A DNA stretch of 64,000 nucleotides from Phallusia mammillata (Eukaryota), in contig OZ281495.1 in the NCBI GenBank assembly GCA_965637545.1, forward strand, positions 27,404,001 to 27,468,000. Reading direction: 5' to 3'. The notes under the pieces are model-generated. The model did not search any database. It had not been told where the DNA came from and saw nothing but the letters and a program-made list of their open reading frames with translations. Every line of letters begins with the position of its first letter. Position 1 is the stretch's first letter. Shown here one piece after another: positions 10,441 to 62,090 of the stretch. The translations under genes and the position numbers were made by a program.

Positions 10441-11307
10441 TTTCGATTACTCAAGTATTAGATGTGTATAGAAGAAAACATTCATTAATTATTTAGAAAC
10501 TAAAATGGTTTACTCTATACCAGGTGTGGCCAACACGTCGATCGCGATCGACTGGTCGATCGTCTGCTTATAACTGGTCGATCTTACTAAATTATCCACA
10601 ACTAATCAAAAGCGTATTCATTTGAAATCTTTTTTAAAATTAAATTTTAAATACCACACAGCACTTCTCTTTATGTAACAGCCGTGATTTTGGCATCAAA
10701 TTATGTCGTAACAAACAGAGTGTTTGCGTTAATGATGCAGATGCAATTGATTGAGGAAATGCAAAAGTTAAAATGCAAAAGCATTTTACAGTTAAGGCTG
10801 TCTTTGATAGGATACACGCCTGATTATGAAAAGTTGGTAAACCATGTGATGACTTAAACATCCCACTGACTACTTTGATAAAAAATGTAGCCTACACATG
10901 CGACTTTTCATTGTCACAAGAACCAAATGATGCTTGACTTTTGCGGACTTTCGCATTTTGTAGTATTGTGGCCCAGTTATGCGGTTATATATGCATTAAA
11001 TTCTTTGTGAGATTTTGTGCCGCTGTATAGGTTTGCTTCTGTTTACATTTGCATTCGTTCTAACTCAAACTTGTATATTCCCCGAAAAAACAATTCAAAC
11101 AATATTGTTTTTGTTTTAAATTGCACTTGTAGACGGCCACGGTCCAGTAATTACGCGAAAATTGTTAGGTGACAAAGCTGTACTAATGTCGTATTGGTGA
11201 CAGTAACCACTGTAGCTCTTTACCGCTGCTTGGTGGTTTACATTTATGAAGCTGCTTAACACTGTAGGAAAAATCTGTATCTTGTTTATGGACTAAAAAG
11301 TAATACA

Positions 11308-11425
11308 GGGGCAGGAACTTGGCCGAATAGTCTGGCGCGCCTGACCCACATACAGACATAAAAAAAACCTTGATTAGGATTCGTCCCCGGGAGTGTCCTT
11401 GGTTCGAACCACGTGAAAAAAAATA
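11308..11425 (+). mobile_element. tRNA-derived SINE-like repeat (with an extra 3' half at ~11500-11530)
   Basis: A-box-like TGGCCGAATAG, B-box-like GGTTCGAACC and an A-rich tail. Similar copies occur at 12405-12519(-), 21841-21955 and 59893-59998. No acceptor stem. Confidence 0.55.
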
Positions 11426-12404
11426 AAAATAAAAAAATAAAAAAAGTGATAGGGTAGGAATTTGGACGACAGGTCCCCGCGCCTTACCACATAGAGACAT
11501 GCGTCCTGGGTTCGAACCCCGTGAAAAATAATAATAATTATACAAAGTGATACGCTTCGAGTTTTTTGTACGATTAATTGCCATGTAGTTAAGAATCACT
11601 AGACAAAATACTCATTTCATGGTTTGCATCAACGCAATCATAAACAGTGCAAACAAAAAAATACAAGCCGTAATGTATACATCAACAGTCAATGTTCATG
11701 TCGTAATTATTGTACTTATATAGCGTGTACAGAGAGCAAGTTTATTGTCGCGAAGGAAGGTCAAGTTTTGCACGCTTCAGTACTTTTCTTTTATGAGAGT
11801 TGTCTTTAAACAATTAAAAACAGTGGCAGAAAATATTCTATAAGGGTATACTATGCTTCCAACTGTAGAATACACCACTGCCCGTGAGTTGTCTGAAAAG
11901 TATTTATGGTTAGCAACAGAGGACGGTCAACAATCAGCTACAATGTCGTCCATATTTTGTTGCGTGTATAGCAATTGTATACTCAGGTTCCTCATTTTCC
12001 CCAAGGCAAGCAACGGTACTTCGAGCCCAATCACCCGAAACCCAACGCCGTCGTTTGATTCATTAACGCGAATAAAGCATAAACATAAAAGTGAAAGGTC
12101 AAAGCAGAAATGTTTAACCGAAGATACGTGCTTTGTTTCATCATTTATGGTTGTTTTATGTTCGTAGTATCGTTCCCACAACAGGAAATGTCAGCGCAGT
12201 TTTTTAGACAATATATATTTAATAAAGAAAAAATAACTGGACTGATTTGGATACAAAGTAGGTTGAAAATTGTAAACGGTAGTGAAAGTTAAATGTTCAA
12301 AACTCTTTTTGTTTCACTTGCTTTGTAAAAATGTAATTGTAATTGTAAATGTAACTGTATAAAACTGTAACATACAAGACCGTTAAACTGTACCAAACGA
12401 CCTT

Positions 12405-15913: not shown

Positions 15914-16840
15914 TTACACTTCCGTTAAAGTCTTCCCAAAGTCCTTTGCCACACAAGAGCAGTTGTCACCTAAACCGACCCCTAGTTCCCCTCTCAACTT
16001 AATTCTCCAGGTTCGACAGGCTAAATAGTCACCGATAAAGTGCCCACCAGGCTTAAATACGTGCGGAAGCACCCTAAAACGTTTCCATATGTTCCGCACA
16101 TTGTCCAGCAAAGACTGTTCGGTTTGTTGATCAGTAGGTTCAGCGGTTTGCTCTTGCGCAACCACACCACGACAACATTCACATAGGCCATTTATAACCG
16201 GTCCAATTTCTACAGAAGAGTGATTTTTGTGTGTTCCCATACCAACCAATGCTGCTGATTTGGATCTAATGTCATTTTTACACTCTACATTAAGGACAAC
16301 CTGAAACAAAAACAATAACATTTTACTGTTGTAGGGCAGAAATACACAAAAAGGAAAATTTCCATCACGTATAGTTTTAAATAAAATACCTAATATGTTT
16401 TTGTTTATTGTTGAATACGCTTTTACCTTTGCAAGACTGGGTTCAGCAAACGTCACTCCACCGAGAGTAACGATAGCCATTTTGTTTGGAAGTTTTTTAG
16501 CGTCTTCTTCCAAAATCTCATTTCTTATCTTGTTGATGTTTTCTACGAGCATTTTAGCCCCATGACTGTGGGCGAAAAACACCAAACCAATTTTGTCGCA
16601 GGGCTGGTCCGATAGCGTTTTTATTAGTGATTTAATAGATTTGCTAAGGTCTTCATCAGCTGAAGTTCCCCGAAACGCATTAAACAAATTACTCTTGTTA
16701 GTTAAAATCTGAAGTTGATCCGATTTGTAATCCAATCCAAAAATTGTTTCTCGCAATCTTCGGGCATCAGGTCTTGCGTCAATCTCATCATATCCACCAA
16801 GTCCCAAAATTACGACAGTTTTGAAATTCTTACACAACAT
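15914..16840 (-). CDS. Subfamily B copy B2, intact, 266 aa (exons 16840-16427 and 16300-15914)
   Basis: Same motifs as B1. The 126-bp intron is in frame and stop-free, which explains the continuous 330-aa ORF in the track. Confidence 0.85.
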   Translation of the reverse strand: MLCKNFKTVVILGLGGYDEIDARPDARRLRETIFGLDYKSDQLQILTNKSNLFNAFRGTSADEDLSKSIKSLIKTLSDQPCDKIGLVFFAHSHGAKMLVENINKIRNEILEEDAKKLPNKMAIVTLGGVTFAEPSLAKVKAYSTINKNILGILFKTIRDGNFPFCVFLPYNSKMLLFLFQVVLNVECKNDIRSKSAALVGMGTHKNHSSVEIGPVINGLCECCRGVVAQEQTAEPTDQQTEQSLLDNVRNIWKRFRVLPHVFKPGGHFIGDYLACRTWRIKLRGELGVGLGDNCSCVAKDFGKTLTEV

Positions 16841-17280
16841 GGCAGCTACTTTTACTGAGCTAAGGGAACATTCGACTACATTGACTTCTCCTCGTAAAAA
16901 GAACATTTCGCACGCTCAGACAACGTACAAGCATGAATTGTTTGTTCACACGGCGCCGAAAGCAACAAAACTTTACCGATTTGAACTAATGCACTTGTTG
17001 CATTTCAATTTTTGTTATTTCAAGTCGTATACTCGCCATAAAATCGTTGACACCCTGCATGGTGCTACGTGCAACCTGGGTTTAAACAATAAGTGCATGG
17101 AAAACTTTATGAGTGTCACCTGATCCAACGGAAAGTTACATAAAAGATACAGCAGGCCTTTTTGTAATGCTGCATTGCTGTAAACAAGCAGTGCCGCTGC
17201 TGCATTTAGCAGGTTATGAATAAAAATGTCTATGTATTAACTTTAACTATGTGTTTGTCACATATTAGCACAGGATCAAT

Positions 17281-41134: not shown

Positions 41135-42438
41135 ATGTCAAACTCAAAGAAGATCTGCCCTAATGCTTGTCTTTATTTTGTTCCTGGATTGGGAGGAAAC
41201 AATCCAGATGATTTTAGAGAGCCTTTTGAAAAAATTAGAAACGGCATTTTTGGCGATGACTTCAAACCAAGTAAGAAACAGATATTGAACAATCGCTGCC
41301 GATATGGAATATACACAGACTTGGAATTGACGACTGAGATTAAAACACTTACAAAGGTTCACCAAGACTGTAAAAAGTACGTTAGTCTGGTGTGGTTTTG
41401 CCATAGTCACGGGGCTACTATGGTTTGTCAAGCTTACAAGGAACTAAAAGATGATTTAAACCCCCAAAAATATCTTTCAATCCTCAAAAAATCAGCAATT
41501 ATTTGCATTGGTGGGACTTCTATTGCAACGAAATCAATGGCAGAGGTAAATAAGTCCATTGAATTTGCAGCTAAACGGTAAAAACAGTGTAGGGAAAACT
41601 TGATATACACATGCAACTTAATCATGCTCACAAGTAAATTAAAATCATAATGTTTTCATTATCATGTCGATGTGTTGGAAAAAAATTAGGTTTTGTGTAC
41701 AAATGACGTATATTGTTTAACAAAAGCTACGAAAAGCAAATATGGCTTTGCACCATGGCTTGACTCGACTAAGTGTTTCGATTTTGTTAGGTTGTATTAA
41801 ACGTTGAATTTAAGAACGATGACATTGCCAGAACTGGGAGAAATCTCTACGGTAGTGAAGATGGTATGTTACAGCAGATTGGTCCACTGAGAGATGGAGT
41901 ATGTACATGCTGCGACATCGGGAAAAGAGCGCAGAATAATACATCCAAGCGTAGGGGGGTTACGTCTACTTCTTCGATGCCTTCTTCCTCTGCTTTATCT
42001 GGCACTTCAGTTGATGGTCCCGAATTTTCTGGAACTGGGAACAACTTTTCTTTGTTTGCCTGTTGCACAAATTTTAACTTTTGTGGCGAATTGTACTGTT
42101 GTACGTGTTGCCCAAAAAAGTCATGTTGTGTGTGTTGTCAGAGAATTTGCTGCTGTTGTTGTAAATCGAATTGTTGGTCGGCTGATCAATCTACGGTTTA
42201 CGAAACGAGATTTACTACAATAACAGCAGAATCTCAAAGCGCTATACAACGGGCAGCTACAGTTGTATGATCTCTGGGCACATTGTTTGTTCCTCAAAAT
42301 AATGAAAGTGCTGCTCATTACATTGACGAATACATTTCATGCGACAACTGGAAAAAAACAGTTAAATTGCTTTTGCCGCGACCGAAAAGCAAAACATGCA
42401 AAATACACTTTAAACGATCTTCTGTTTCACACATTTAA
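41135..42438 (+). CDS. Subfamily D copy D1 (exons 41135-41545 and 41791-42438) with one in-frame TGA at 42268-42270
   Basis: All motifs and the Cys-rich insert are present. The frame continues past the TGA through AHYIDEY to TAA 42436-42438. Probably a nonsense allele or young pseudogene. Confidence 0.7.
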
Positions 42439-43479: not shown

Positions 43480-44735
43480 TTTGTATGCATTGGGGTATTT
43501 GGAAAAGATATTTTGGGAAAATATTGGATCTCGAAGGTTTAAACGAATTAGATACAGTATTTTCGGCGTTAACTTTAAATCAAGTGAGGCGCAGATATTG
43601 AAATATCGCTGTCAATATGGAATAAAGACTGACGTGCAATTGACGACTGAGATTAAAACACTTACAAAGATTTACCCGCGCTGTGAATAGTACATTAGTC
43701 TGGTGTATTTTGCCATAGTTGCGGTGCTGGTATGGCCAGTTAAGCTTACAAGCACTAATCAGCAACTATTTGCTTCGTTGTGTATTTATGTGCAGCGGAA
43801 TCATTGGCAAAGGTAAGAGTTCATTGAGATTTGCAGCTAAACTAGGGTTACCACATGTCAGGAATTTCCTGGACATGTTCGGAATTGGAGCGTAAAATCT
43901 GCTTTCGGAAATATTTTTCAATAACAATCTTAATATCCGGAATTTTAGCATTTTCCTGTGGGGCACTATTGTGTCCCTTATAAAGGTTCACATGTTTTTG
44001 ACTATTTTTTGTACGGTTGTGATTTACGATGCTGCCTACATATTAAGCAAAACAACTGACCAGCTTGAATTAAACGGCAATTTGGTGAACATTTTTTGCA
44101 TTTTAAAAGAGTTTTGCACTATGGCTTGACTCGACTAAGTGTTTCGATTTTGTTCGACCTTTTCAGTGTGATCTTTTTAAGGTTGTATTAAACGTTGAAT
44201 TTGAGAACGATGTCGTCACCCAGGCTGGTGAAAAGTGTAGGTTACAACAAATTGGACCACTAAAGGATAGAATTTGTACGTGTTGCAACGGAAGTAAAGG
44301 AACATCGAAAACTACAAGAAATAGGGATATCTCATCTGGAATTACGTCCACTTCTTCTTCGATGCCTTCTTCCTCTTTTTGATCTGCAGTTGAATGTCCA
44401 GTCTTTTCTGCAAACAATTTTGCCTGTTGCACAAATTTGAACCTTTGTAGCGAACTGTACTGTTGTGCTTGTTGTCCGAAAATCACGTGCTGTCCATGTT
44501 GTCCGGGAATATGTTGCTGTTGTTGTAAATCGAATTGTCGGTCGGTTGATCAATCTACGGTTTACGAGGCGAGATTTACTACAGTAACAGCAAAAGCACA
44601 AATGTTTTACATGGGGTAGCTACGGTTGTATCGACTGCCACCACTTTTTTTGGTTCCTCGAGATAACGAAAGTACTGCTTCTTATATTGAGGAATAAATT
44701 TTATGCGACAACTGGAAAACGGTAGTACAGTATGA
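43480..44735 (+). pseudogene. Subfamily D pseudogene (D2)
   Basis: Degenerate exon 1 (donor ~43812); exon 2 from 44182 with the Cys-rich tract and frameshifts. Confidence 0.8.
43845..43975 (+). mobile_element. MITE-end-like segment in the D2 intron (TAGGGTTACCA...), shared with the D4 intron (~61510-61650, reverse) and partly D0
   Basis: Terminal sequence resembles CAGGGTTGCCA at 6312 and TAGGGTTGCCA at 63827; absent from the D1 intron. Confidence 0.5.
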
Positions 44736-47451
44736 TCTTTTGTTTCACACTGTGAAGCCCTAATGGACAACTTGTTTTTTCTGCACTGTTGGCTGTTAAA
44801 TCCCGGTTTCTAATTTATGTATATTTTAGTGTTTTTTTTTAGTGTTTTTGTGTGTTTTAAGACTTTGGGGATAACATTACTGTTCGTACGTTTCTTCTGG
44901 TTATGCATTGTTTTTCATTCAGTAAAAATCGATAATAGCTATTGCTGAATATTGTGTAAAAGTTATAATGCTTACATTATATTGCATGTAATCAGTTGCG
45001 AACGTATCTAACATCTTGTATTTATTTAGATTGTTCAAATATTAACATATTTACTCCGTTTAACTGATTGAAACTCTTGCTTTTGTAACGAAAATTTTCA
45101 TTAGCTGTATACAAAAGCAATTTTAAACTACCTAGCTGTCCGAGCATTTTTACGTATAGTATTGTCTTCTAAGTCTGCCGGTTATTTTTATACCAGTACC
45201 AAACATTTTTACGACGCAAAATCCGAAACACCAAGGAACAGTAAAGAGCTGCACTGGTTAGTCTATCCAGATCTGAGGCTACTAAGCAGAGACTGTACAC
45301 TGCGTTTTTATAAAGATTGGTTCTGCTGGTACGCGCCCAATTTAACTGCGGCGGGCGCATAAATGCGCCCCGACACATGCCTGGTTCTAAACAGCGATAA
45401 AAATCGTATTAGAGCGGATATTTTTTACAACTGGGGTGCGTTTGAAAGCTTATGCATATTAGCTTCAATTTATTCGAAAAAAATGATATGTTAGTATTTG
45501 AAAAAAATTAATTACACCAAGGAGAAAGTCAAAATTCAGAAAAAACGTGTTTTTTTCTAATTTATGTTTTGCAGCCATTTTTTGTTATTTTACGCTTGGT
45601 TGATTACCACACAGCTGTTTGGAGTTTGTTTCAGGGCTCTGTAAGGGCGTTGTGGCGATCTTTGTTTACAATTTGATGTGTGTTCAGCTGAATTGGGCTT
45701 GAAAGTGGGTAGTTTTGGGCAGTAAATTTGCCTTGGTTTGCTTGATTATACTGCTGTATCAGTCAGTTTAGCTTTACTATTCGTGGTGAAAGCAGTTATT
45801 TATCAAGAAAACAACTGTTGTAGAAGCATTTTGACTTAGGAAGTTTGTGGTTGCTGACCAATATTTTGATTATATCTGGTCCTCAACTGCATTTACATTG
45901 CCAAATGGTAGGATTTGGCCTCATGAATGGACAACAAATACAGAAGAATCAGGGCAAAGTACCTTGGGAATGCTTGGAATTGTGTTTTTTCTGCTAACTT
46001 CTGTGAACTGTGTTTCAAACTTGCACATGTTGTGGTGTAATGATACATAATAAACATCCCATGTACAAACACTTGTAAATGAATTATGTGTGTACAGGTA
46101 TTTAGTAAACGTTTGAATAAGTCCGTAAATTGTCAAGATTGCCACAAATCATTATTGAAAACAAGTTTCATACGCTCAAAAACATTAATTTTATCCTTTA
46201 CTACAGAAAAATAAGAAACTAAAATTGATCATTATGACGTCATGAGCTAATTAATGACGTCATCGAAAAAACACACATCAAGTTTTGTAAGGAATTGTTT
46301 GTAAAACAACTTGGAACTAATAATTGTAACTAAAAACACCGATAAACTGCAATTTTATGGAAAAATAGAATTGAAATGACGTCATTTCGTAAGTGATGAC
46401 GTCATCGAAAATTTTTTTATCTTCAATTTGATTCTGTTGATTGGTAGATCAACTAGACTACTTGTGAAAACATATTGAACAAACAAACTCTCCGCAGGCG
46501 GAAACAAAAAAGCAGAGGTGGCGATTGAATGTATGAAATTTGCTACCAAGTTGTCGGATGTGCATGTATGACGAAAATAAACCATTACCAACGTATATAG
46601 ATCATATTTGCTGTAATGAATGCAATAATTAAAAAAGACCAGGCTAGGCCTTACACTTTTCAAATACTTTATCATCTTGCTTTTTGTTGTGGTACTTGTG
46701 TTTCATTTTAAATAAAATGAAGATTTTTACACAAACGTGATTTTAGGTGTTATTATTAAGCAGCTTAAACTAACCAACTTTATAGGTGTTGATCCCAGAT
46801 ATATTAGTTTGATAATGATCAGGATGAAACTGGGCCTATACCTCCATGGGCCGGATGGGTGTTTTACCTTTATATCTTTGAAAAAGTAGTCTAGTTGTTT
46901 AAACAACCATCAAAATCCGCTTGAAAAGCCTATGTCTCACGTAAACAAAACAAAAAGATATCGCCCCTTTTATGTCGTCGCTAAACGGGCAGTGTGCAGT
47001 CTCTGTTAATTGGTCTATGGTTTAACCAAGACAGTTACCGCGGATCAAAGTGATATTTTCTGAGCATTAATTTAGGACTTTCTGCTACCGACTAAAAGTG
47101 CGATTCACAAAATCAAAGTTGTTCATCAAAAAGATTTTTAATGAATATACTAAGGGCTTTACAAAAAAATTTGAGTCGATTTATTTAACAACTATTGCTC
47201 AGAAACAATTTAAGTTGTAAAAAGGTTGCACAAAAATTGTTTCAAATATGACAGCATCCTTGCAAACTGCAAGAATCGGCAAACTGTGTACAACATGATA
47301 CAGAGCAGCTCTTTGCTGCCGCTTGGTGTTTTGGATTTCACAGCGTAAAAAAATACTCGGTACACAAAAGCACCAACAAGAAATCACAAAAATATACATA
47401 GTGCAGAAAAAACAAGTTACCCATTAGGGCTTTACAGTGTGAAAGAAAAGA

Positions 47452-50400
47452 TCATTTAATGTGTGTTTCGAATGTTTTACTTTTCGATGGTGGTAAAAGC
47501 GCTTTAGCTACCGTTTTCCAGTTGTCGCATAAAATGTATTCCTCAATGTGATGAGCAGCACTTTTGTCCTCAAGGAACAAAAAAAGTGGCGCAGTCGATA
47601 CAACCGTAGCTACCCGATGTAAAACGTTTTGTGCTTTTGCTGTTACTCTATTAAATCTCACCTCGTAAACCGTAGATTGATCAACCGACCGACAATTTGG
47701 GTTACAACAACAGCAGCATCATATTCCCGGACAACATGGACAGCATGTGATTTTCGGACAACGCTTACAACAGTACAGTTCGCTGCAAAAGTTAAAATTT
47801 GTGCAACAAGCAAACAAAGAAAAATTGTTTCCAGTTGCAGAAAAAACTGAACCACTAACTGCAGAGCCAGATAAAGCAAAGGAAAAATGCATCGAAGAAG
47901 AAGTGGACTTTCAATCAACAAATAGAGGTGCCCTGTCTGAGTCTGACGTTAGCGACAACCAAATGTTCCTGTTTTTCCATACACTTCCGGATGATGTCCA
48001 GCGTCGATCTGTCCGTGACACGTGACTGCCATTCAAGAAGTCATACGCTGCCGACCACGATATCTTCGCCCCTCCACCTTCCCGGTAAGCACCAGATGTT
48101 CCAATTGCTTCTTAATCACGTGGCCGAGAAATCGAACCTGTCTCGTGACGATAGTCCGCATCAATTGTCTTGTTGTTCCAGCCCACTGCAGCACCGTGTC
48201 ATTTCGCACTTTCTTCGTCCAGGGTATGCCCATCATTCTTCGCAGAAACCACATTCCGCTTCCTCCAGGCGATTCTCCGTCGTTTGGCTGATGGTCCAAC
48301 ACTCACAGCCCCATACGAGACACGGCCACACATAGCATTTCAAGAGCCGAAATTTGGTTGTAATGCTGATCGAGCGAGAGGTCAGAACGCTTTACATGTT
48401 TTTGTAGGCAGTCTTTGCATTCCAATGCGCCTGCGAATATCTATGTCGCACTTTCCTGTCGATGTTTACGTGCTGCCACAGTACTGGAATTGACTGACCT
48501 GATCCAGCACTCCCTTCACTGTGATGTAGCACGGCGGCGTGGAAGGCTTGTTGGAGAAAACCATCACAAACGATTTTCTTTTGTTGATGGTAAGCGCTTT
48601 CATTTCACTTTTCTTAACCGTCTTGTTCATCATGTTCTGCAGCTTCTCTTCTGTGTCGGCGATAAGTACAGTGTCATCGCCGTATCTCAGGTTATTGATA
48701 TTCACCCCGTCAATGATGAAACTTTTCAGATCTTTGATGTGGCCCATTATCATTTCCGTGTAAAGAGAACAGGTCTGGTGACATGATACACCCTTGCCTC
48801 ACTCGGCGTTCGATGTTTACCTACTCACTCAGCGCACCATCTATCCTAATTGTTGCCTGCTGGTTCAAGTACATTTTCTTGATCAATTCGATGTCCTTCC
48901 CGTCGATATCCAATGTCTCCAGCATTTCAATCAACGGTTCGTGCCTTACTTTATCAAACGCCTTGACATAATCGATGAAACGGGCACATATATCACGCTG
49001 CATTTCAATTGCTCGCTCTTTTATCATCCTCAAAATAAAGATGGCGTTCCGCGTACCCTTATCCGAAGTGAACCCGTACTGCTCTTCACTTCTCCAGTCG
49101 TTCTGCCTCGGATGCTGTTAATTAGAATCCGAATGACAAGCTTCGTGATGTGACTCATGAGGCTGATGGTTCTATGTTGCTCACATTTTGTGGCACCCGG
49201 TTTCTTTTGTAAGGTGATGAAAACAGATTTGCACATCTCCGCTGAAAAATGACCTTCATCGTAGATTCGATTCGCTGGCTCTGTTATCGTTTCGACTCAA
49301 AAATAGGCAAGAGTTTCGATCATTTCCATTGCGATCCCGTCCGCGCCAGTTGCTTTGCCTCTCGATAGACTCTGTATGGCTCGTTCGGCCCCATCTTTAA
49401 GTATCAGACTTCCTCCAGTCTTCTTAATATTAGGCCGTGGTCTTCTGTCATCAGCAAACAGTTCTCCTATGTACCCTGTCATCTCTTCAGGATCTCGTCT
49501 TTCTCCATAATAATGGTACTGTTATTCGCCTCAATACAGCTGAAGGTTCAACTTTTCTGCCGCCATATTACTAGCCGTCATTCTTCGTGCACCCGCTGTG
49601 GGTTATTGCATATCAGGAGCTCAACATTTCGGACTGTAAATGTTTTCTTCTAATTAATACTTGTCGCGGATTGTTCGATCCAGCCGCCTGTACTCCGGTG
49701 ACTTCCTTTTAAGCTTCCGGCGTTTGTTCATCAGTTCAAGGATTTCCGGTACCATACAATCATGATTTGCGAAACGGGTGACCGTTTGTACCACTTTCTC
49801 TGCAGCTTTCGTCATTACATGCGCCAGTACACTAATCTCTAAGTGTCTTCTCCGTTGTCATTCAATAAACAACCCCGTACCATCGTCTGATATTGGCTTT
49901 TTACTGTGTCGTCCTTCCACAACATATTCAGATCGAGCTTTGGAGCTTCGCTTTGATGATCTTCTTTAGTTTAAGCCTCATGGTAGCTACTAGAAGTACA
50001 CGGTCAGTATTGCAATCAGCGCCCGCGTAGCCTTTTACAATCAGGATTGAATTTCGGAAACTTCGGTTGATCCTGTGACGTGCACTGTTTCAGCGCCTTG
50101 TCTAGATCGTCATAGAAATCATCCAGTTCCTTCTCACTACTGCTGCTCGTCGGGGCGTAAACCTGCACTATTGCGATGTTGAAAGGTTCGCCACGCAGGT
50201 TCACCATGATCACTTGATCTGAGATGATCCAGTAGCTCATCAAGCTATCTTTCTCCGGGCCCGAGTAAACGATGGTAGTGTCACCGTCTTTCCTGATAGC
50301 GTCAATCTGATTTCACTGACTCCTAAGATTTTGATATTGACTCTGCACAAGGAGCCCCAGTTCCCTCCCGCCGGAGCTTTTGTCGAGGCTTGCTCCTCTA

Positions 50401-50880
50401 AATCCGCTCAGATCCCCTACCGAGGTAGGTTTTTGTAGCTTTCGTTAAACAACTCATGCCATTTTTACTTCCATATTTCCATCACTTTGGCATGATAAAC
50501 CAAAACTTATGATTTTAGTATTTTTACTTGTGATTAGAGTTACATGTGTAGATCAACAAGAAGGAAAGTTACAATGTATCCCAGTTTCCCTTCACTATTT
50601 TTACCGTTTAGCAGCAAAATTCAATTGACTATTTTATCTTTGCCAGTGATTCCGCTGAAAATAAAGCCACACTAATGCAAAAAAATTGTCTAGATTGTAA
50701 GATGCTGATTTGTCTAAAATTGAAAGATATTCTTCGGGGTTTAAATCATCTTTCAGTTCCTTGTAAGCTTGACAAACCATAGTCGCCCCGTAACTATGGC
50801 AAAACCACACCAGATTAACGTACTTTTTACAGTGCAGGTGAACCTTTGTATTCGTTGTAACCCCAGTCGTCAATTCCACG
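47452..50880 (-). pseudogene. Subfamily D pseudogene (D3) split by an RTE LINE
   Basis: The 3' half of exon 2 lies at 47452-47910 (AHHIEEY, Cys tract with TGA). An exon 1 fragment lies at 50634-50880 (WFCHSYGATMV) with its donor lost. Confidence 0.8.
47927..50430 (-). mobile_element. Degraded RTE-clade non-LTR retrotransposon (AP endonuclease + reverse transcriptase)
   Basis: Fragments: IVQVYAPTS (APE), KCEQHRTISLMSH, FIDYVKAFDKV, INNLRYGDDTVL (YADD equivalent), FLRRMMGIPW...FLGHV...GRRYRGRQR. Many frameshifts; locally higher GC. Confidence 0.9.
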
Positions 50881-51439
50881 TGAGCAAATATTTGACAACA
50901 CGCCGAACTGGAAGTTGAAGGTTAATTATCGAACTACACTTGAGCTCGCTCACGCCTCGCCAAACAACGTTAAGAACAATAAAAGCCTTTTTTTCGAGGT
51001 ACACTATGCTTCCAGTGGTGGTTCAATTGGTGGCCCATAGCTAACGTTGTTACATTTTAAGGCCCTTTAACGATTTATTTATTGTTCCTTTTTGAAACCT
51101 TAACCTTTGCAACACAGCCCAATCCTTAAGCCTACTTGTACTTGATGTTTGCAACGTTCTTCCAAGCGCATTGTTTACTTTACATGGCCCAAAATCGATT
51201 GACCATCATGGTAGGCTACTTTTAGAAGTCACTTAAAACATCGGATAATAATGTATAGGAGGGGTAAAAAAGTCGATAAGTAAAACTTGAGCTTGTGGTC
51301 AAGCTAGAATGTTTGGAACTCGTTGCAGGGCAGAACCGAAGATGGCTTGTAAGGCTTGCAAAAATGTATAACGTGCATAACAACAATGTAAATGTATAAC
51401 GTGCAAAGTTTTCAAAAACCGTAGAAACGTACACTATAC

Positions 51440-55993: not shown

Positions 55994-56869
55994 TTAGACA
56001 TAAAAGTCAGACGACCCAACATGTTTTGGAGCCGGAAAAAAACAAGGTTCACGGTAATGGATGTCGCATATCCTTTTCTTTGAGAGTGACAGCAGTTCTT
56101 GCACTTTTTTTCGCCAATTTTTGCATTTGAGATACTCCCATATATAATGGGCCTTCCTAGCAGACTGGTCCGTTGATCTATGGTTTTTGGATCCAAGGGC
56201 GCTTGGGAAACCAACTGAAAATCCTTGAGCAGTTCCTCCTGCCGCTTCGTTTGTATTTTGTAGCTCGGGTTCAATGGATTTGTTATTGCAGCACATACAA
56301 TACCCGTTTTCGATTGGGCCAATGTTGAAAATGTTACCGTCACGCTCTCCAATCATGTATGACCCACCTCTCGCATACTTATCATTTTGAAATTCCACGT
56401 TGAGGCAAACCTAAAGTAATCAATTTTATCTATTTCCCAATTACTTGAAAAACCTACTAATGTGAAAACACTTTTGCTTATAAATCGTCCAATAAGTAGT
56501 TTGGTTCATTATTTCATTAACTTGTGTTATAACAGATAAAGTTGAGATTACCTGCGCCAAAGATTCAGTTGCAGTAAAAACTCCCCCAATGCATATAATC
56601 GCCGAACTGACTCTCAAATTTTCGAAGTTTTCGGAAGCTCTATCAAACTCTGCATATGCTTCACAAACCATCTCATTCTTTAGCGAATTGTCCGACTTTA
56701 ATCCAAAACGGCAGTTGTTGTTTAAAATTGACATTACAGTCGGTTTAAACTCCAGACCAAATATCGTGTCGACGATGTGGTTAAAATGAGGACTGAAAAA
56801 AGAAGAGTCAGTTCCTCCCAATCCAGGAACAAAATATATACTGGCGTTTGGACACAAATGCTTGGACAT
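55994..56869 (-). CDS. Divergent A-like copy (A6), open frame of 244 aa lacking the HSHG nucleophile (exons 56869-56552 and 56410-55994)
   Basis: MSKHLCPNASIYFVPGLGG...SLKNE/MVCEAY shows a ~26-codon in-frame deletion relative to A4. The 141-bp intron and exon 2 (NVEFQND, CMCC, AHYIWEY) are intact. Confidence 0.75.
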
Positions 56870-58501
56870 GTTTCGAACATCCACAGTACAAATATTTTGG
56901 TGAACACCAAACTTAAACACGTTCTTTCGCAAGCATAATTGGATCCAATTAGCTTTCAACAGGTCAATGAAGAATTGTAAAACAAAACATTTTATACACG
57001 AGTTTAAGCATGCCAAAAGTATTAAGCTGAAAAATACTTGTAGTTCAGTGAAAACAGTTTCGTCAGAAATTTTATGTTTAGTTTAAAAGGTTCAATTATT
57101 TATTTTTGTGTCGCACTCGTTTTTTAGACTTCAATCTGGCTAAACATTTCTTTTCTATCAGCAATATCAGCTTCACTGCGCAAACGAGGGAAAATGAAAA
57201 GAAAATAGTTGCAACACTGGCGCTAAGTTATTCACCTGCTGCTTTTGAGTGGTTCTAATATGTTACCTTCACGAATCAGCGCATCGGTTCACTTGGTTGT
57301 GTGGCGAATTTTTAGCACTTTCACCGTTTGTAATAATGAGCTGGTTAACTCCTTTATTTTCACACACCTACGTGCACTTATAATCGTTTTGTTTGAAGCG
57401 TTGCCTATTGGGTATCCTGGCGCTTAACTCTGTTATTATTGTTGTGTTTAATTGGTTTGTTTTGCCAATCATATTTTCACCATATCATATTTCCACGGCA
57501 TATATCTTGTTTTACCACACACTGTATATATCTTGTTTTACTACACACCATTCACCTATTTGTTTTATATTGTAATAGTTGTCTTTTCTCCGTTTGTATG
57601 ATCGCCCTTTCCCCGCCACTAATTTACGCTTGATTGTTGTATCGTTACCCGGGTGTGCCTTTGGTCGTCACGTGATTGTTTCTTCCACGTACGTGGCCGC
57701 GTCGCACGTGCGAGTAAAATAATGAAGGTCAGTCTTCCTCTGGGCGCCGTGCGAGTTACACCTGTTGGTTTCTGTTCTGTGTTGTACTGGCGTTTACTGA
57801 TTATTGAGCGCAGCGTATTGAAGTTGGAAATACGTGTTGTTTTACGCCAGTGTATTTTATCGCTTTTACTTAAACAAGGCGCCCATTAGTGAAACCAGTT
57901 TGTGGTCTTTCTTTGGCTTAGTGGTGAGCCGTTATTGCAGGGTTCGGGCCGTTTCCGAATTAGGGAGGCAGTTTTGGTTTTAAAGGTACAGAATTAGGCT
58001 TAAGGGGTTGATTGGAATTTAATATCGCCACTTGAAAGATCTCTTAGCCGAATTCCCAAAGCTGCCGAAATAATTCCGTAACAGTTGCATCAGAAAAGGA
58101 CGTTACGCCGATGGTTGCTGAAAAAAAAAACAACTCTACGACAAAGTCAATGCCGTTGGTTTTTACACTGAGTCAAGCATTTGTTGGACTGCCATGATGC
58201 GAGTGAAACACACAAGCATGGCTAACTAGGTTAGAATCACTGCAGATTTCTACATAAATAAAAGTTTGAGTAAAAGAAGATAAAACGAGCTGAGATTGAT
58301 TAACACCTGTAGAGTGCAATAAAAAATGTGTCATAAACAAATTTAATTAAAGATACTCTATTTGGGCTTCAAATTTGGACTAAAAAAACTAGAACATTTT
58401 AACAAGTTATCCACGAAATTGCCGTAAACTACAATACTGCAAACTTTCCATGAGTGTTGACTTCAATTCTGTTTTTGTTACAGTGCTTACACAGCAGCAG
58501 C

Positions 58502-59381
58502 ATGTCGGAACTGTGTAAAAATGTCAGTGTCTTTTACGTGGCTGGCTTAGGAGGGATCAGTGCTTCTTATTACGAAAACGTTTTGAAGCAACTCAACGAA
58601 TCTATATTTACTCTTCAGTTTGAGCCTAAATCCAGAATATTTGCCAACAATAGCTGACTTTTGTTTCAAGACAAATTTTGACACCAAACATCATAAAGAC
58701 CGTTTTGGATCATCACCATTGTAACCATGTCAGCATGGTTTGGTTCTGCCACAGTCACGGAGCTAAGATAGTCCGTGATGCCTATATGGAGCTACAAGGT
58801 ACACAGCAATTTGATCAGATTCGGAACAGTTCTGCCATCATTTGCATTGGCGGAGTTTCGTTGGCAGAAAAGCATTTGGCAAAGGTAATACCAACTGGCT
58901 ATTTAAGTCGGTAAAATTATTTATACAAAAAGAAAACTTCAATTCGCCTTTAAAACTGTCAAGTTTTTATGTACAAACACGGTTAGATGGTATTCGAGAT
59001 TTTAAGACCTTGGATTAAAGTTCACTCTACTATAAACCCTCGTATTTAGGTTGTTTTAAACGTCGAGTATAAAAACGATGATTTTGCACAAGCTGGATCA
59101 ACAGAGATATTGCAGACGTGTTTGGAATCGGTCCGTACAAACACAAATTGTGCGAATGTTGCAATGGTTCACAGTCACCTGAAATGAATAGAGCCGAAAC
59201 GGGGGCAAGCATTGGACTTTCTTGTGGCTCGTCTGCCAGCTCCAAACATAGTTCACCTTCATTTTTCGACCACGAAAAAGCACATTTAATAGAAGAATAT
59301 CTTGCCTGCAAAAAGTGGCGTCTCGAACTACAAGGCCTCCTTCCGCTTAGTCAAAGCGTCTGTAAAACACATTCTTATTAG
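58502..59381 (+). pseudogene. Subfamily C pseudogene (C6)
   Basis: TGG->TGA at 58655-58657 and a nearby 1-nt deletion; exon 2 (59050-59381) is 13 bp shorter than in intact C copies. Confidence 0.85.
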
Positions 59382-59892
59382 CTTTACCAAAACTCAATGT
59401 TTGCATTTTGCAACTTTGACACGCATTGTAGCAAAATATAAACAAAGAAATGTATAGGTAGCAGATGCCTTACGAACCTTCAATCTAGTGTACTGTATTA
59501 TGTTGTACATAATTTTCCTGTAGTTTGTAAGGATGCTGTCATATTTGAAACCATTTTTGTGCAACCTTTTTACTCCCTTTAACTTGTTTCTGAGCAATAG
59601 TTGTTAAATAAATCGACTCAAAATTTATTGTAAACCGCTTGAAGTATATTCATTGAAATTACTTGGATAAACAACCTTAATTTTGTAAATTGCACATTTA
59701 GTCAGAAGCAGAAGGTCCTAAAATAATGCTTAGAATAGATCACTTTGATCTGTAGTAATTGTCTTGGTTAAAGTAACCAGTGCAGCTCTTTACTGCCCCT
59801 TGGTGTTTCGGATATTGCAGCGTAAAAACACTTACCGGTACCGGTATAAAAATAACCGGCAGACTATTACCGAAGACAATTATAGGTCAAAT

Positions 59893-59998
59893 GGACAGAA
59901 AGTTGGCCGAATGGTCCAGCGCGCCTGACCCATATACAGACATAAAAACCCTGATCGGGATTAGTGTCCTGGGTTGGAACCCCGTGAAAAAAAATAAA
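59893..59998 (+). mobile_element. tRNA-derived SINE-like repeat (extra 3' half at ~60060-60100)
   Basis: TGGCCGAATGG, GGGTTGGAACCC and A-tail; matches the other copies. Confidence 0.55.
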
Positions 59999-60511
59999 AA
60001 ATAAAAACAAGACAATAATACGTAAAATGAACAGAAACTTGACCCTGACCGAGATTTGTCCAGGGAGTGCCCTGGGTTCGAACCCTGTGAAAAGAAAAAA
60101 AAAAAAACAGTAATACGTAAAATTCTCTTACAGCTCGGTAACAAATGTTTCTGTATACAGCTATTTCAAACTTTCGTTACAAAAGCAAGCTTTTTAATCA
60201 GATAAACAAAGTAAATAATTTAATAACTAATCATTTTGAAATAATACAAGATATTAGATACGTGCGGTAACTGATTACATGCGAAATGATGACAGCTTTA
60301 TAACCTTTACACAGTAATCACCAATAAGCGGTTTCTACTGAATAAACAACAATACATAAACAGAAGAAACGGTCCCCTTAGTCTTAAAATACACAAAAAC
60401 AATAATAAGAAATCACTAAAATATACATCTGTTCAAACGAACGCGATTAAGTGGCCAACAGTGCAGAAAAAACACGTTGTCCATTGGGGCCATTTAGTGA
60501 GAAACAAAAGA

Positions 60512-62090
60512 TCATTTAAAGTGCGTTTTGCATGTTTTACTTTTCGATCGCGGCAAAAGCGATTTAACAACAGTTTTCCAGTTCTCGCATAAAATGTATT
60601 CGTCAATATAGTGAGCTGTACTTTCGTTATTTCGAGGAACAAAAAAAGTGGTCGCAGTCGATACAACTGTAGCTACCCGATGTAAAACGCTTTGTGGTTC
60701 TGCTGTTATTGTAGTAAATTTCGCCTCGTAAACCGTAGATTTATCAACCGACCCACAATTTGGTTTACAACAACAGCAGAAGCATTTTCCCTGACAACAT
60801 GGACATGCAATTTTCGGACAACACGTACAACAGTGCAGTTCGCCACAAAGGTTAAAATTTGTGCAACAAGCAAACAAAGAAAAGTTGTTCCCAGTTGCAG
60901 AAAAGACTGGACCATCAACTGAAGAGCCAGATAAAGCAGAAGAAGAAGAAGGCACCGAAGAAGAAGTAGACGTAACCCCAGATGAAATACCTCTACTTCT
61001 TGTATTTTTTGGTGTTCCTTTACTTCCGTTACAGCACGTACAAACTCCATCCTTTAGTGGACCAATGTGTTGTAACCTACCCTTTCCACTCCCGTATAAA
61101 ATTCTCCCAGTCCTGGCGACATCATCGTTCTCGAATTCAACGTTTAAGACAACCTTAAAAAGATCACACTGATATGGTTGAGCAAAATCGAATTAAGCCA
61201 TGGTGCAAAACTCCATTTGATCTTCGTAGCTTAAACATCTCACGTCATTTCTGTACAAAATCTATTTTTTTCCACCACGTGGTGGAAAAGCCATATACAT
61301 GGCATGATAATCAAAAGGTTGTGATTTTAGTTTACTTGTAAGCATGATTAAGTGGTATGTGTAGATCAACAAGATCGAAAATTAATGCCTCCGAGTTTTT
61401 CCTACCGCAAAATTCCTGTCGGTTTGAATAAAATCTTTGGCGACACTAAACTGTTGGACTGATTGACAGTTTTAGGACGATCTGAACCGTAAAACCGTAC
61501 AGAAAGCAATTAAAATGAAACCTTAGTGTCCCACAGAAAAATGCTAAAATTCCGGACATTGGGAGTGTTTTAGAAAAATATTTCCGGATATAGATTTTAC
61601 GCCCTAATTTCGGACATGTCCATCAATTTCATCACGTCTGATAACCCTAGTTTAGCTGCAACACTCAATGGACTCTTACCGTTGCCAGTGATTCCGCTGC
61701 ACATGAAGATCCACCGATGCAAATAATTGCTGATTTGTTGAAGATTAGAAGATATTCTCTGGGGTTTAAAACATCCTTTAGTTCCTTGTAAGCTTGACAA
61801 ACCATAGTCGCCCCGTAACTATGGCAAAACCACACTAGACTAACGTACTTTTCACAGTGCTGGTGAACCTCTACAAGTGTTTTAATCTCAGTAGTCAATT
61901 CCACGTCAGTTTTTATTCCATATTGGCAGCGATTTTTCAATATCTGTACTTTACTTGACTTAAATTTCACGCCAAAAATACTGTCTCTGATGCTTTTAAA
62001 AGGCTCTCTAAAATCATCTGGATTGTTTCCTCCCAATCCAGGGACAAAATAAAGACAAGCATTAGGGCAGATCTTCTTCGGATTTAGCAT
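60512..62090 (-). CDS. Subfamily D copy D4, intact, 350 aa, Cys-rich (exons 62090-61680 and 61153-60512)
   Basis: YFVPGLGG, WFCHSYGATMV | VVLNVEFEND, CTCC, Ser-rich then Cys-rich tract, AHYIDEY. The 526-bp phase-0 intron splices to an open frame (5' part of exon 2 translated by hand). Confidence 0.85.

Follow-up and report, generated by a model that had tools for sequence, protein, structure and literature searches.

An internal cysteine string in an alpha/beta-hydrolase-fold protein of a sea-squirt gene array, possibly a lipid anchor

The 64-kb stretch of Phallusia mammillata DNA analyzed here (C2:27404001-27468000, hereafter the window; genome 240 Mb, GC ~37%) carries, together with its flanks, a tandem cluster of a two-exon gene, one member of which, D4 (60512-62090, minus strand), encodes the cysteine-rich tract that is the subject of this study. 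At least 46 matches to the first exon were found in the genome, several of them broken (more than 40 first-exon copies), and all lie within ~135 kb (C2:27.34-27.48 Mb) except for one weak short match at ~27.52 Mb. Exon 1 of the family (~135 aa) encodes a first strand, then GLGG and then an elbow of the form (C/A)HS(H/Y)GA. The order in exon 2 is VVLNVEFxND, IGP, an invariant CxCC, a hypervariable stretch, AHYIxEYxxCxxW and a C-terminal CxxH. Second exons span 114-147 aa in the A, B and C types versus 199-213 aa in the D type. The resulting difference of 66-99 aa is close to the ~70-110 aa given in an earlier reading of the letters alone (the original prediction).

D4 is the sole intact D copy in the window. 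Its gene model and the parts of its insert are as follows.

61680-62090, minus strand: D4 exon 1, 137 codons, placed by open reading frame (ORF), alignment and a GTAAGA donor at 61679
61154-61679, minus strand: D4 intron, 526 nt, GT..AG, GTAAGA donor, TTTTAAG acceptor, phase 0
60512-61153, minus strand: D4 exon 2, 213 codons and stop
60875-61030, minus strand: Ser/Thr-rich linker upstream of the tract, exon-2 residues 42-93, fast-evolving
60755-60874, minus strand: cysteine-string tract, protein residues 231-270, 16 Cys in 40 (40% Cys)
60629-60754, minus strand: D-specific conserved segment after the tract, ~42 aa, with FTTIT and PQS motifs, in D copies only

Ser91 (codon 61818-61820) is encoded in exon 1, in the nucleophile elbow CHSYGA, as are the first strand and the GLGG oxyanion loop. 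Exon 2 encodes Asp147 (61124-61126), in the VVLNVEFENDD strand, and His318 (60611-60613), in the AHYIDEY motif, together with the CxCC motif and the D-specific insert. The coding frame of exon 2 contains 0 stops versus 4 and 16 in the other two frames, and the spliced protein has 350 aa and 29 Cys. A further intron excising the tract was considered and rejected, as none of the four stop-free D-type second exons (D4 and the L002, L003b and L004 copies listed below) contains an in-frame GT..AG that combines a GTRAG donor with a pyrimidine-rich acceptor. Over the Ser linker and the Cys tract (60706-61050, minus), another frame of this strand runs for 114 codons without a stop and would encode a Leu/Val-rich peptide. 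The D1 copy is overlapped by a comparable ORF at 41894-42223 (plus). Such an open frame is most likely a by-product of TGT/TCT-rich sequence.

The presence of a Cys-rich tract in D4 between the catalytic Asp and His, as originally proposed, was confirmed, with all 16 Cys lying between Asp147 and His318. The tract starts with FACCTNF, ends with KPNC and shows the Cys pattern CCx5Cx4CCxCCx4CxCCx3CxCCCCx3C. It is dominated by CC and CCCC runs (7 CC steps versus 3 CxC), and it also holds three Phe, a His and several Leu/Ile, with Lys/Pro after the Cys runs. A six-frame survey of the window gave 280 open segments with a length of 60 aa or more; the four D copies alone reach 10-17 Cys per 40 residues, and no other segment exceeds 7. 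Each of the four stop-free D copies has 14-17 Cys within ~33-40 residues, with FSLF or VSLL as the lead-in.

A family-wide alignment of second exons shows that the D insertion comprises ~85 residues, namely the Cys tract and the ~42-residue conserved segment, and that the A, B and C types are without it. It lies at the end of the common Ser-rich variable region, just ahead of the His motif. The tract is internal, ending 80 residues before the C-terminus. The Asp-to-His loop is hypervariable in all subfamilies. The placement of the insert in a lid region, as originally proposed, is conjectural; the insert follows the acid residue in this family-wide hypervariable loop. In an AlphaFold2 (AF2) model of D4 exon 2 alone, based on a shallow alignment, the linker, the tract and most of the following segment (exon-2 residues 45-177) have a predicted local distance difference test score (pLDDT) below 50. 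Such values argue against an autonomous folded domain in the model and do not separate a lipid anchor from a metal-dependent fold.

Divergence among the D copies indicates that purifying selection acts on the tract. The four stop-free second exons are all open over ~200 codons though the deepest pairs have a synonymous divergence (dS) above 1, and their length differences are all in frame. Pairwise ratios of nonsynonymous to synonymous divergence (dN/dS), all from small counts, are 0.20-0.42 in the tract, 0.19-0.31 in the segment after it among the four stop-free second exons and 0.7-1.0 in the Ser linker of deep D-D pairs. Within the tract of these four, 10 of the 16 Cys are invariant versus 5 of the 24 other residues (Fisher p 0.018).

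Structure prediction and structural matches support the original prediction that the host has an alpha/beta-hydrolase fold, with Ser, Asp and His placed as is canonical for this topology. The AF2 model was made from the paralogue L010:841-1647, whose 57-nt intron is open and in frame, with an alignment in which misplacement affects only the first 15 residues of nine exon-2 rows. It has a predicted template modelling score (pTM) of 0.76, and its low-confidence parts are the stretch encoded by the intron, residues 169-174 and the variable loop only. The best 50 structural matches (VIA) are all alpha/beta hydrolases (Z 9-11.5, 155-195 residues aligned, spanning residues 5-266) and include LPLA2, minimal lipases, cutinases, TesA, APT2 and LYPLAL1; Foldseek, on which the VIA search does not depend, and ESM Atlas agree with this fold, weakly and with lower scores. 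In the model, Ser86 is located between strand E78-85 and helix H87-101, the Asp (ND) comes directly after the strand VVLNVEY (E153-159), and the His is found at the start of H244-247, before the last helix. HS is invariant in exon 1 across 14 aligned cluster copies, ND is invariant in exon 2, and the His there is near-invariant. The catalytic triad Ser91-Asp147-His318 of D4 therefore appears sound at the level of topology, as far as the model goes. No Pfam or NCBIfam family reaches threshold for the host protein, and no Pfam abhydrolase family was matched; nearest in Pfam is DUF900, at the elbow, with sub-threshold E-values of 0.05-0.08 in three members.

The first strand of the model begins at residue 4 (residues 4-13) and therefore leaves no room for a signal peptide. 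The homologous Ciona protein described below and the protein of an mRNA-like contig (P0007) share this starting point. From these features of the sequence we infer that the D4-type protein is cytosolic. Minimal alpha/beta hydrolases (B. subtilis LipA, cutinases, APT1/2, the LPLA2/LCAT core, DUF900) share the fold and the triad order, and likewise have a GLGG-type oxyanion loop and an AHSxGA-type elbow. What sets the sea-squirt family apart from them is a set of invariant residues of its own (CxCC, C and CxxH) and the hypervariability of its Asp-to-His loop.

Several conserved Cys and His residues lie outside this loop. The CxCC is invariant family-wide (CTCC in D4, at 61028-61045), as are an N-terminal Cys and a Cys ahead of the elbow. 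A Cys four residues past the EY of the AHYIxEY motif is near-invariant (60587-60589 in D4), and the C-terminal CxxH is kept in most subfamilies (60521-60532 in D4). These residues are a candidate structural Zn site in a cytosolic hydrolase.

Nine D-type copies were found, four in the window and five outside it. Besides D4, they are the following.

41135-42417, plus strand: D1, exon 1 at 41135-41545, exon 2 from 41791, tract at 42055-42180 with 17 Cys
44182-44739, plus strand: D2 exon-2 remnant with three stops, tract at 44419-44544
47455-47907, minus strand: D3 exon-2 remnant, 5'-truncated, with a stop within the tract (47686-47814)
C2:27392015-27393579: L002 copy, intact, exon 2 85-88% identical to D4
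C2:27348287-27349481: L003b copy, intact, ~50-55% identical to D4
C2:27369120 and upstream: L004 copy, exon 2 intact, exon 1 broken
C2:27345989-27347619: L003a copy, exon 2 split, with a stop
C2:27471386-27471808, minus strand: L001 copy, exon 1 only, without a D-type exon 2

The cluster outside the window thus adds three stop-free D-type second exons, two of them with an intact exon 1 as well. The original prediction had the tract persisting in D1, D2 and D3. It is indeed kept in these copies, but all three contain stop codons, and in D2 and D3 it persists only as pseudogene sequence. In D1, a TGA at 42268-42270 interrupts the frame after the tract and ahead of the His motif, and by its sequence the copy is likely a recent pseudogene. 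In a tree of first exons the D copies form one clade (support 97/98), and the insert therefore most simply arose once.

Two further observations concern these copies. A GC-rich block (46% versus ~37%) with several plus-strand ORFs of 100-135 aa occupies 47900-50000. On one side of it is what remains of D3 exon 2, on the other a fragment of a D-type exon 1 (~50700-50891), and D3 was probably split by the insertion of a mobile element here. The first exon of the L001 copy (L001:3395-3808, corresponding to C2:27471395-27471808, minus) is 93% identical to that of D4 and forms an orphan exon just outside the window.

The tract had been likened to CYSTM or metallothionein modules. Membership in either family was not supported, as a hidden Markov model search with the tract alone gave no Pfam family at an E-value of 10 in three D copies, the CYSTM and metallothionein families included, the tract is internal, and the motifs do not fit. 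CYSTM (PF12734) is the C-terminal tail of small proteins. Like the tract, it has Cys runs associated with membranes; in D4, however, the run is internal. Ascidian metallothioneins with their 12-Cys domain are, like the tract, short and very Cys-rich sequences in an ascidian. Their motif is [CxC]x5[CxC]x2Cx2Cx2[CxC]x4[CxC]x3-6CC, and they are free proteins of 38-45 aa (PMC8476144), whereas the D4 tract is embedded in a 350-aa enzyme and has aromatic and hydrophobic residues. As a regular expression, neither this motif nor that of the vertebrate alpha domain (PMC8476144) fits any of the four stop-free D-type exon-2 sequences. Searches with the tract against NCBIfam and, by features, the ESM Atlas gave no usable match, and among Protein Data Bank sequences only chance matches to L32 zinc ribbons were found (E ~0.09). 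The best match elsewhere in the genome itself, on contig C8 (E 0.04), proved on reading not to be a Cys string. A genome scan with PF00131 returned no matches, and its control was equally silent.

Analogues of the tract do exist. The view that the architecture has no precedent overstates the case, because ABHD17A/B/C are alpha/beta hydrolases with a conserved, palmitoylated Cys cluster that is needed for plasma-membrane targeting; in ABHD17A, the cluster and adjacent hydrophobic residues are required for both targeting and activity (PMC12562545). These proteins, the FAM108 depalmitoylases, resemble D4 in combining the fold with a multi-Cys cluster of their own. Their cluster is N-terminal and has five Cys, whereas the D tract is internal, between Asp and His, and has 14-17. 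No sequence relationship between the two was detected, which makes D4 an analogue rather than a member. The architecture is a variant of a known theme, the Cys-cluster-anchored alpha/beta hydrolase. To our knowledge, no internal Cys string of such length between two catalytic residues has been described.

The second analogue is the cysteine string protein (CSP), whose string of 12-15 Cys is palmitoylated and thereby targets it to membranes (PMC4447612). Like the D tract, the string of CSP-alpha/DNAJC5 is a dense Cys run with interspersed hydrophobic residues in a cytosolic host. The CSP host is a DnaJ co-chaperone and that of D4 a hydrolase, the tract searches gave no homology, and the likeness is one of description, not alignment. 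The D tract has the sequence features of a cysteine string, with at least 12 Cys in a few dozen residues, hydrophobic neighbours and a putatively cytosolic host.

A lipid anchor and metal binding, both named in the original prediction, are the two sensible readings of the tract. By analogy, we favour a multiply S-acylated cysteine-string membrane anchor, a tentative choice that we rate as quite possible although short of probable. It is based on the vicinal Cys, the hydrophobic lead-ins, the basic residues and Pro after the runs, the flexible linker, the cytosolic host and the predicted disorder. D4 and the other D copies with a stop-free exon 2 would then encode a cytosolic minimal alpha/beta-hydrolase with a three-part insert in the Asp-to-His loop. 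Short hydrophobic lead-ins (FSLFACC, NFNLC) might confer a weak initial membrane affinity, DHHC acyltransferases would S-acylate many of the tract cysteines, and the multiply lipidated string would hold the enzyme on the membrane. The Asp and His loops of the alpha/beta-hydrolase fold are found at the active-site edge of the sheet, and an anchor there would therefore turn the catalytic face to the bilayer. Such an orientation would suit membrane-embedded esters or thioesters, for example lipids or lipidated proteins.

Several points weigh against a string of this kind. No RNA evidence was obtained, as the only runs holding D4 sequence (X1 and X2) are DNA. They seemed to miss the intron (72% of words), but their contigs span it and are genomic. 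Twelve further runs of the same species, guessed to be RNA, contained no words of D4 or the L002 paralogue, a weak negative given that the runs are small. Among the nine D-type copies, all but D4, L002 and L003b carry stops, are split or are partial. No D-type orthologue was found in any collection searched, whether by word-based, profile or JGI metagenome contig searches. The non-Cys motif CGEL is invariant in the tract, hinting at a specific structure or partner and not at a generic lipid anchor, and CCxCC is also found in vertebrate metallothionein alpha domains. Finally, the low AF2 confidence would be equally expected for a metal-dependent fold, and the model covers half the protein on a shallow alignment.

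As an alternative, the tract could hold metal (Zn, Cu, Cd or other) in a thiolate cluster like that of metallothioneins, which would store, buffer or sense the metal and could gate the active site. The family to which Phallusia mammillata belongs accumulates metals. The CCxCC start resembles the vertebrate alpha domain, low AF2 confidence is typical of apo metal-cluster peptides too, and the family's invariant CxCC, C and CxxH outside the tract could bind Zn. With 35-40% Cys, the tract equals or exceeds the ascidian metallothioneins in Cys density (27-31%; PMC8476144). However, no Pfam metallothionein model was matched at an E-value of 10, the ascidian and vertebrate alpha-domain motifs fit no tested D copy, and nothing similar occurs elsewhere in the genome. 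In D4, CC and CCCC runs exceed CxC, and the tract contains the three Phe, the His and the several Leu/Ile noted above, residues that classical metallothioneins avoid. We consider a metal-thiolate cluster unlikely, though less so than the other rivals of the acylated string.

The tract might also be a functionless low-complexity expansion, produced by TGT-rich slippage in a tolerant loop of a decaying, fast-duplicating cluster whose D genes are silent or being lost. In keeping with this, 13 of the 16 Cys codons are TGT and the adjoining Ser tract is TCT-rich, the loop is hypervariable in every subfamily, and RNA evidence was not found. D1, D2 and D3 are broken, and outside the window one exon 2 is split by a stop, one exon 1 is broken and one exon 1 stands alone. 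Neutral sequence of this kind is nevertheless hard to reconcile with four second exons that stay open over ~200 codons at dS above 1 with indels all in frame, with a tract dN/dS of 0.2-0.4, below that of the adjoining linker, and with the preferential invariance of Cys positions. Moreover, the other two exon-2 frames are closed, and no plausible in-frame intron removes the tract. We therefore regard this explanation as distinctly unlikely. A redox-sensing or disulfide-forming module, whose oxidation would switch the hydrolase or its location, has little chance of being correct. Clustered vicinal thiols are redox-active and the insert stands between two catalytic residues, yet the searches brought up no known redox motif or fold, thioredoxin-like or otherwise, and a cytosolic location keeps thiols reduced.

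The breadth of the family was assessed with a profile of 14 exon-1 sequences searched exhaustively against 1.84 billion representatives, which yielded eight proteins. Logan assemblies of public runs account for four of them and metagenome records (JGI/ENA) for two. The Logan contig from run DRR090687 has the intron in the expected place, and one relative is a 258-aa full-length protein on an mRNA-like contig. The only Ciona homologue is Ciona intestinalis LOC100185416 (P0008, with a longer isoform P0015, F6QS40_CIOIN, of 297 aa; the isoforms are 84% identical), and no paper mentioning this locus was found. When proteins were searched by words, neither D4 exon 2 nor a B-type read-through ORF gave a match, and the Ciona protein recovered only its own isoform. 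The D-type alignment, used to scan JGI metagenome contigs, produced 280 pattern matches, none of which was confirmed. The family, one of small esterase/lipase-like enzymes, is an orphan, tunicate-restricted as found and without a Pfam family.

In the distant relative P0006 (metagenome contigs L007-L009), Cys replaces the nucleophile Ser (AHCHGA), and a matching second exon with NYYFLND, CKCC and GHYAHDC motifs lies ~1.7 kb downstream.

The Asp-to-His loop of the Ciona protein carries a membrane-seeking sequence of another type. In P0015, a Gly/Ala/Val-rich hydrophobic segment of ~45 aa is located between CSCC and AHF, and its 19-residue Kyte-Doolittle mean, measured on the shorter isoform P0008, reaches 2.1. 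This segment may form a monotopic hairpin in the membrane. It is a second, independent hint, as the presence of two unlike membrane-seeking sequences in one loop suggests that membrane attachment of the enzyme occurs through this loop and that such targeting is recurrent there. A bolder proposal, which we think rather improbable, is that the loop is a slot for interchangeable membrane-targeting cassettes (a Cys string in D, a Gly/Ala/Val hairpin in Ciona) and that the D string is both anchor and substrate, its own thioesterase stripping the acyl groups in a self-timed cycle of attachment to the membrane and release, with the anchor at the active-site face instead of a protein end.

If the string is acylated, the D proteins would be natural alpha/beta hydrolases anchored via an internal loop beside the catalytic residues, where ABHD17 and APT use a terminal anchor, and the tract would be a very long cysteine string outside the CSP family. 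Should it bind metal, it would represent a metallothionein-like domain built into an ascidian enzyme. The tract would also provide a handle on an uncharacterised hydrolase family, with more than 40 first-exon copies in one sea-squirt genome versus a single gene in Ciona, and a comparison of the Ciona and Phallusia cassettes could reveal how membrane-targeting modules arise in a tolerant loop.

Short repeated elements with a tRNA-like GGTTCGAACCC box followed by A-runs occur directly 3' of D4 and elsewhere in the array (59900-60110 and 11183-11599). By sequence they look like copies of a short interspersed element (SINE), and ARAGORN called no tRNA in 59000-61000. In two paralogues the intron is stop-free and in frame (15917-16906, minus, ~140 nt; L010:826-1647, plus, 57 nt), so that the whole gene is a single ORF of 330 aa or 273 aa, respectively. 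Intron retention in these two would add a peptide directly before the Asp strand. In the array member at 56441-57016 (minus), the exon-1 segment with the HSHGA elbow is lost and exon 2 (55997-56410) is intact, and this is likely a non-catalytic or decaying copy, to judge from its sequence.

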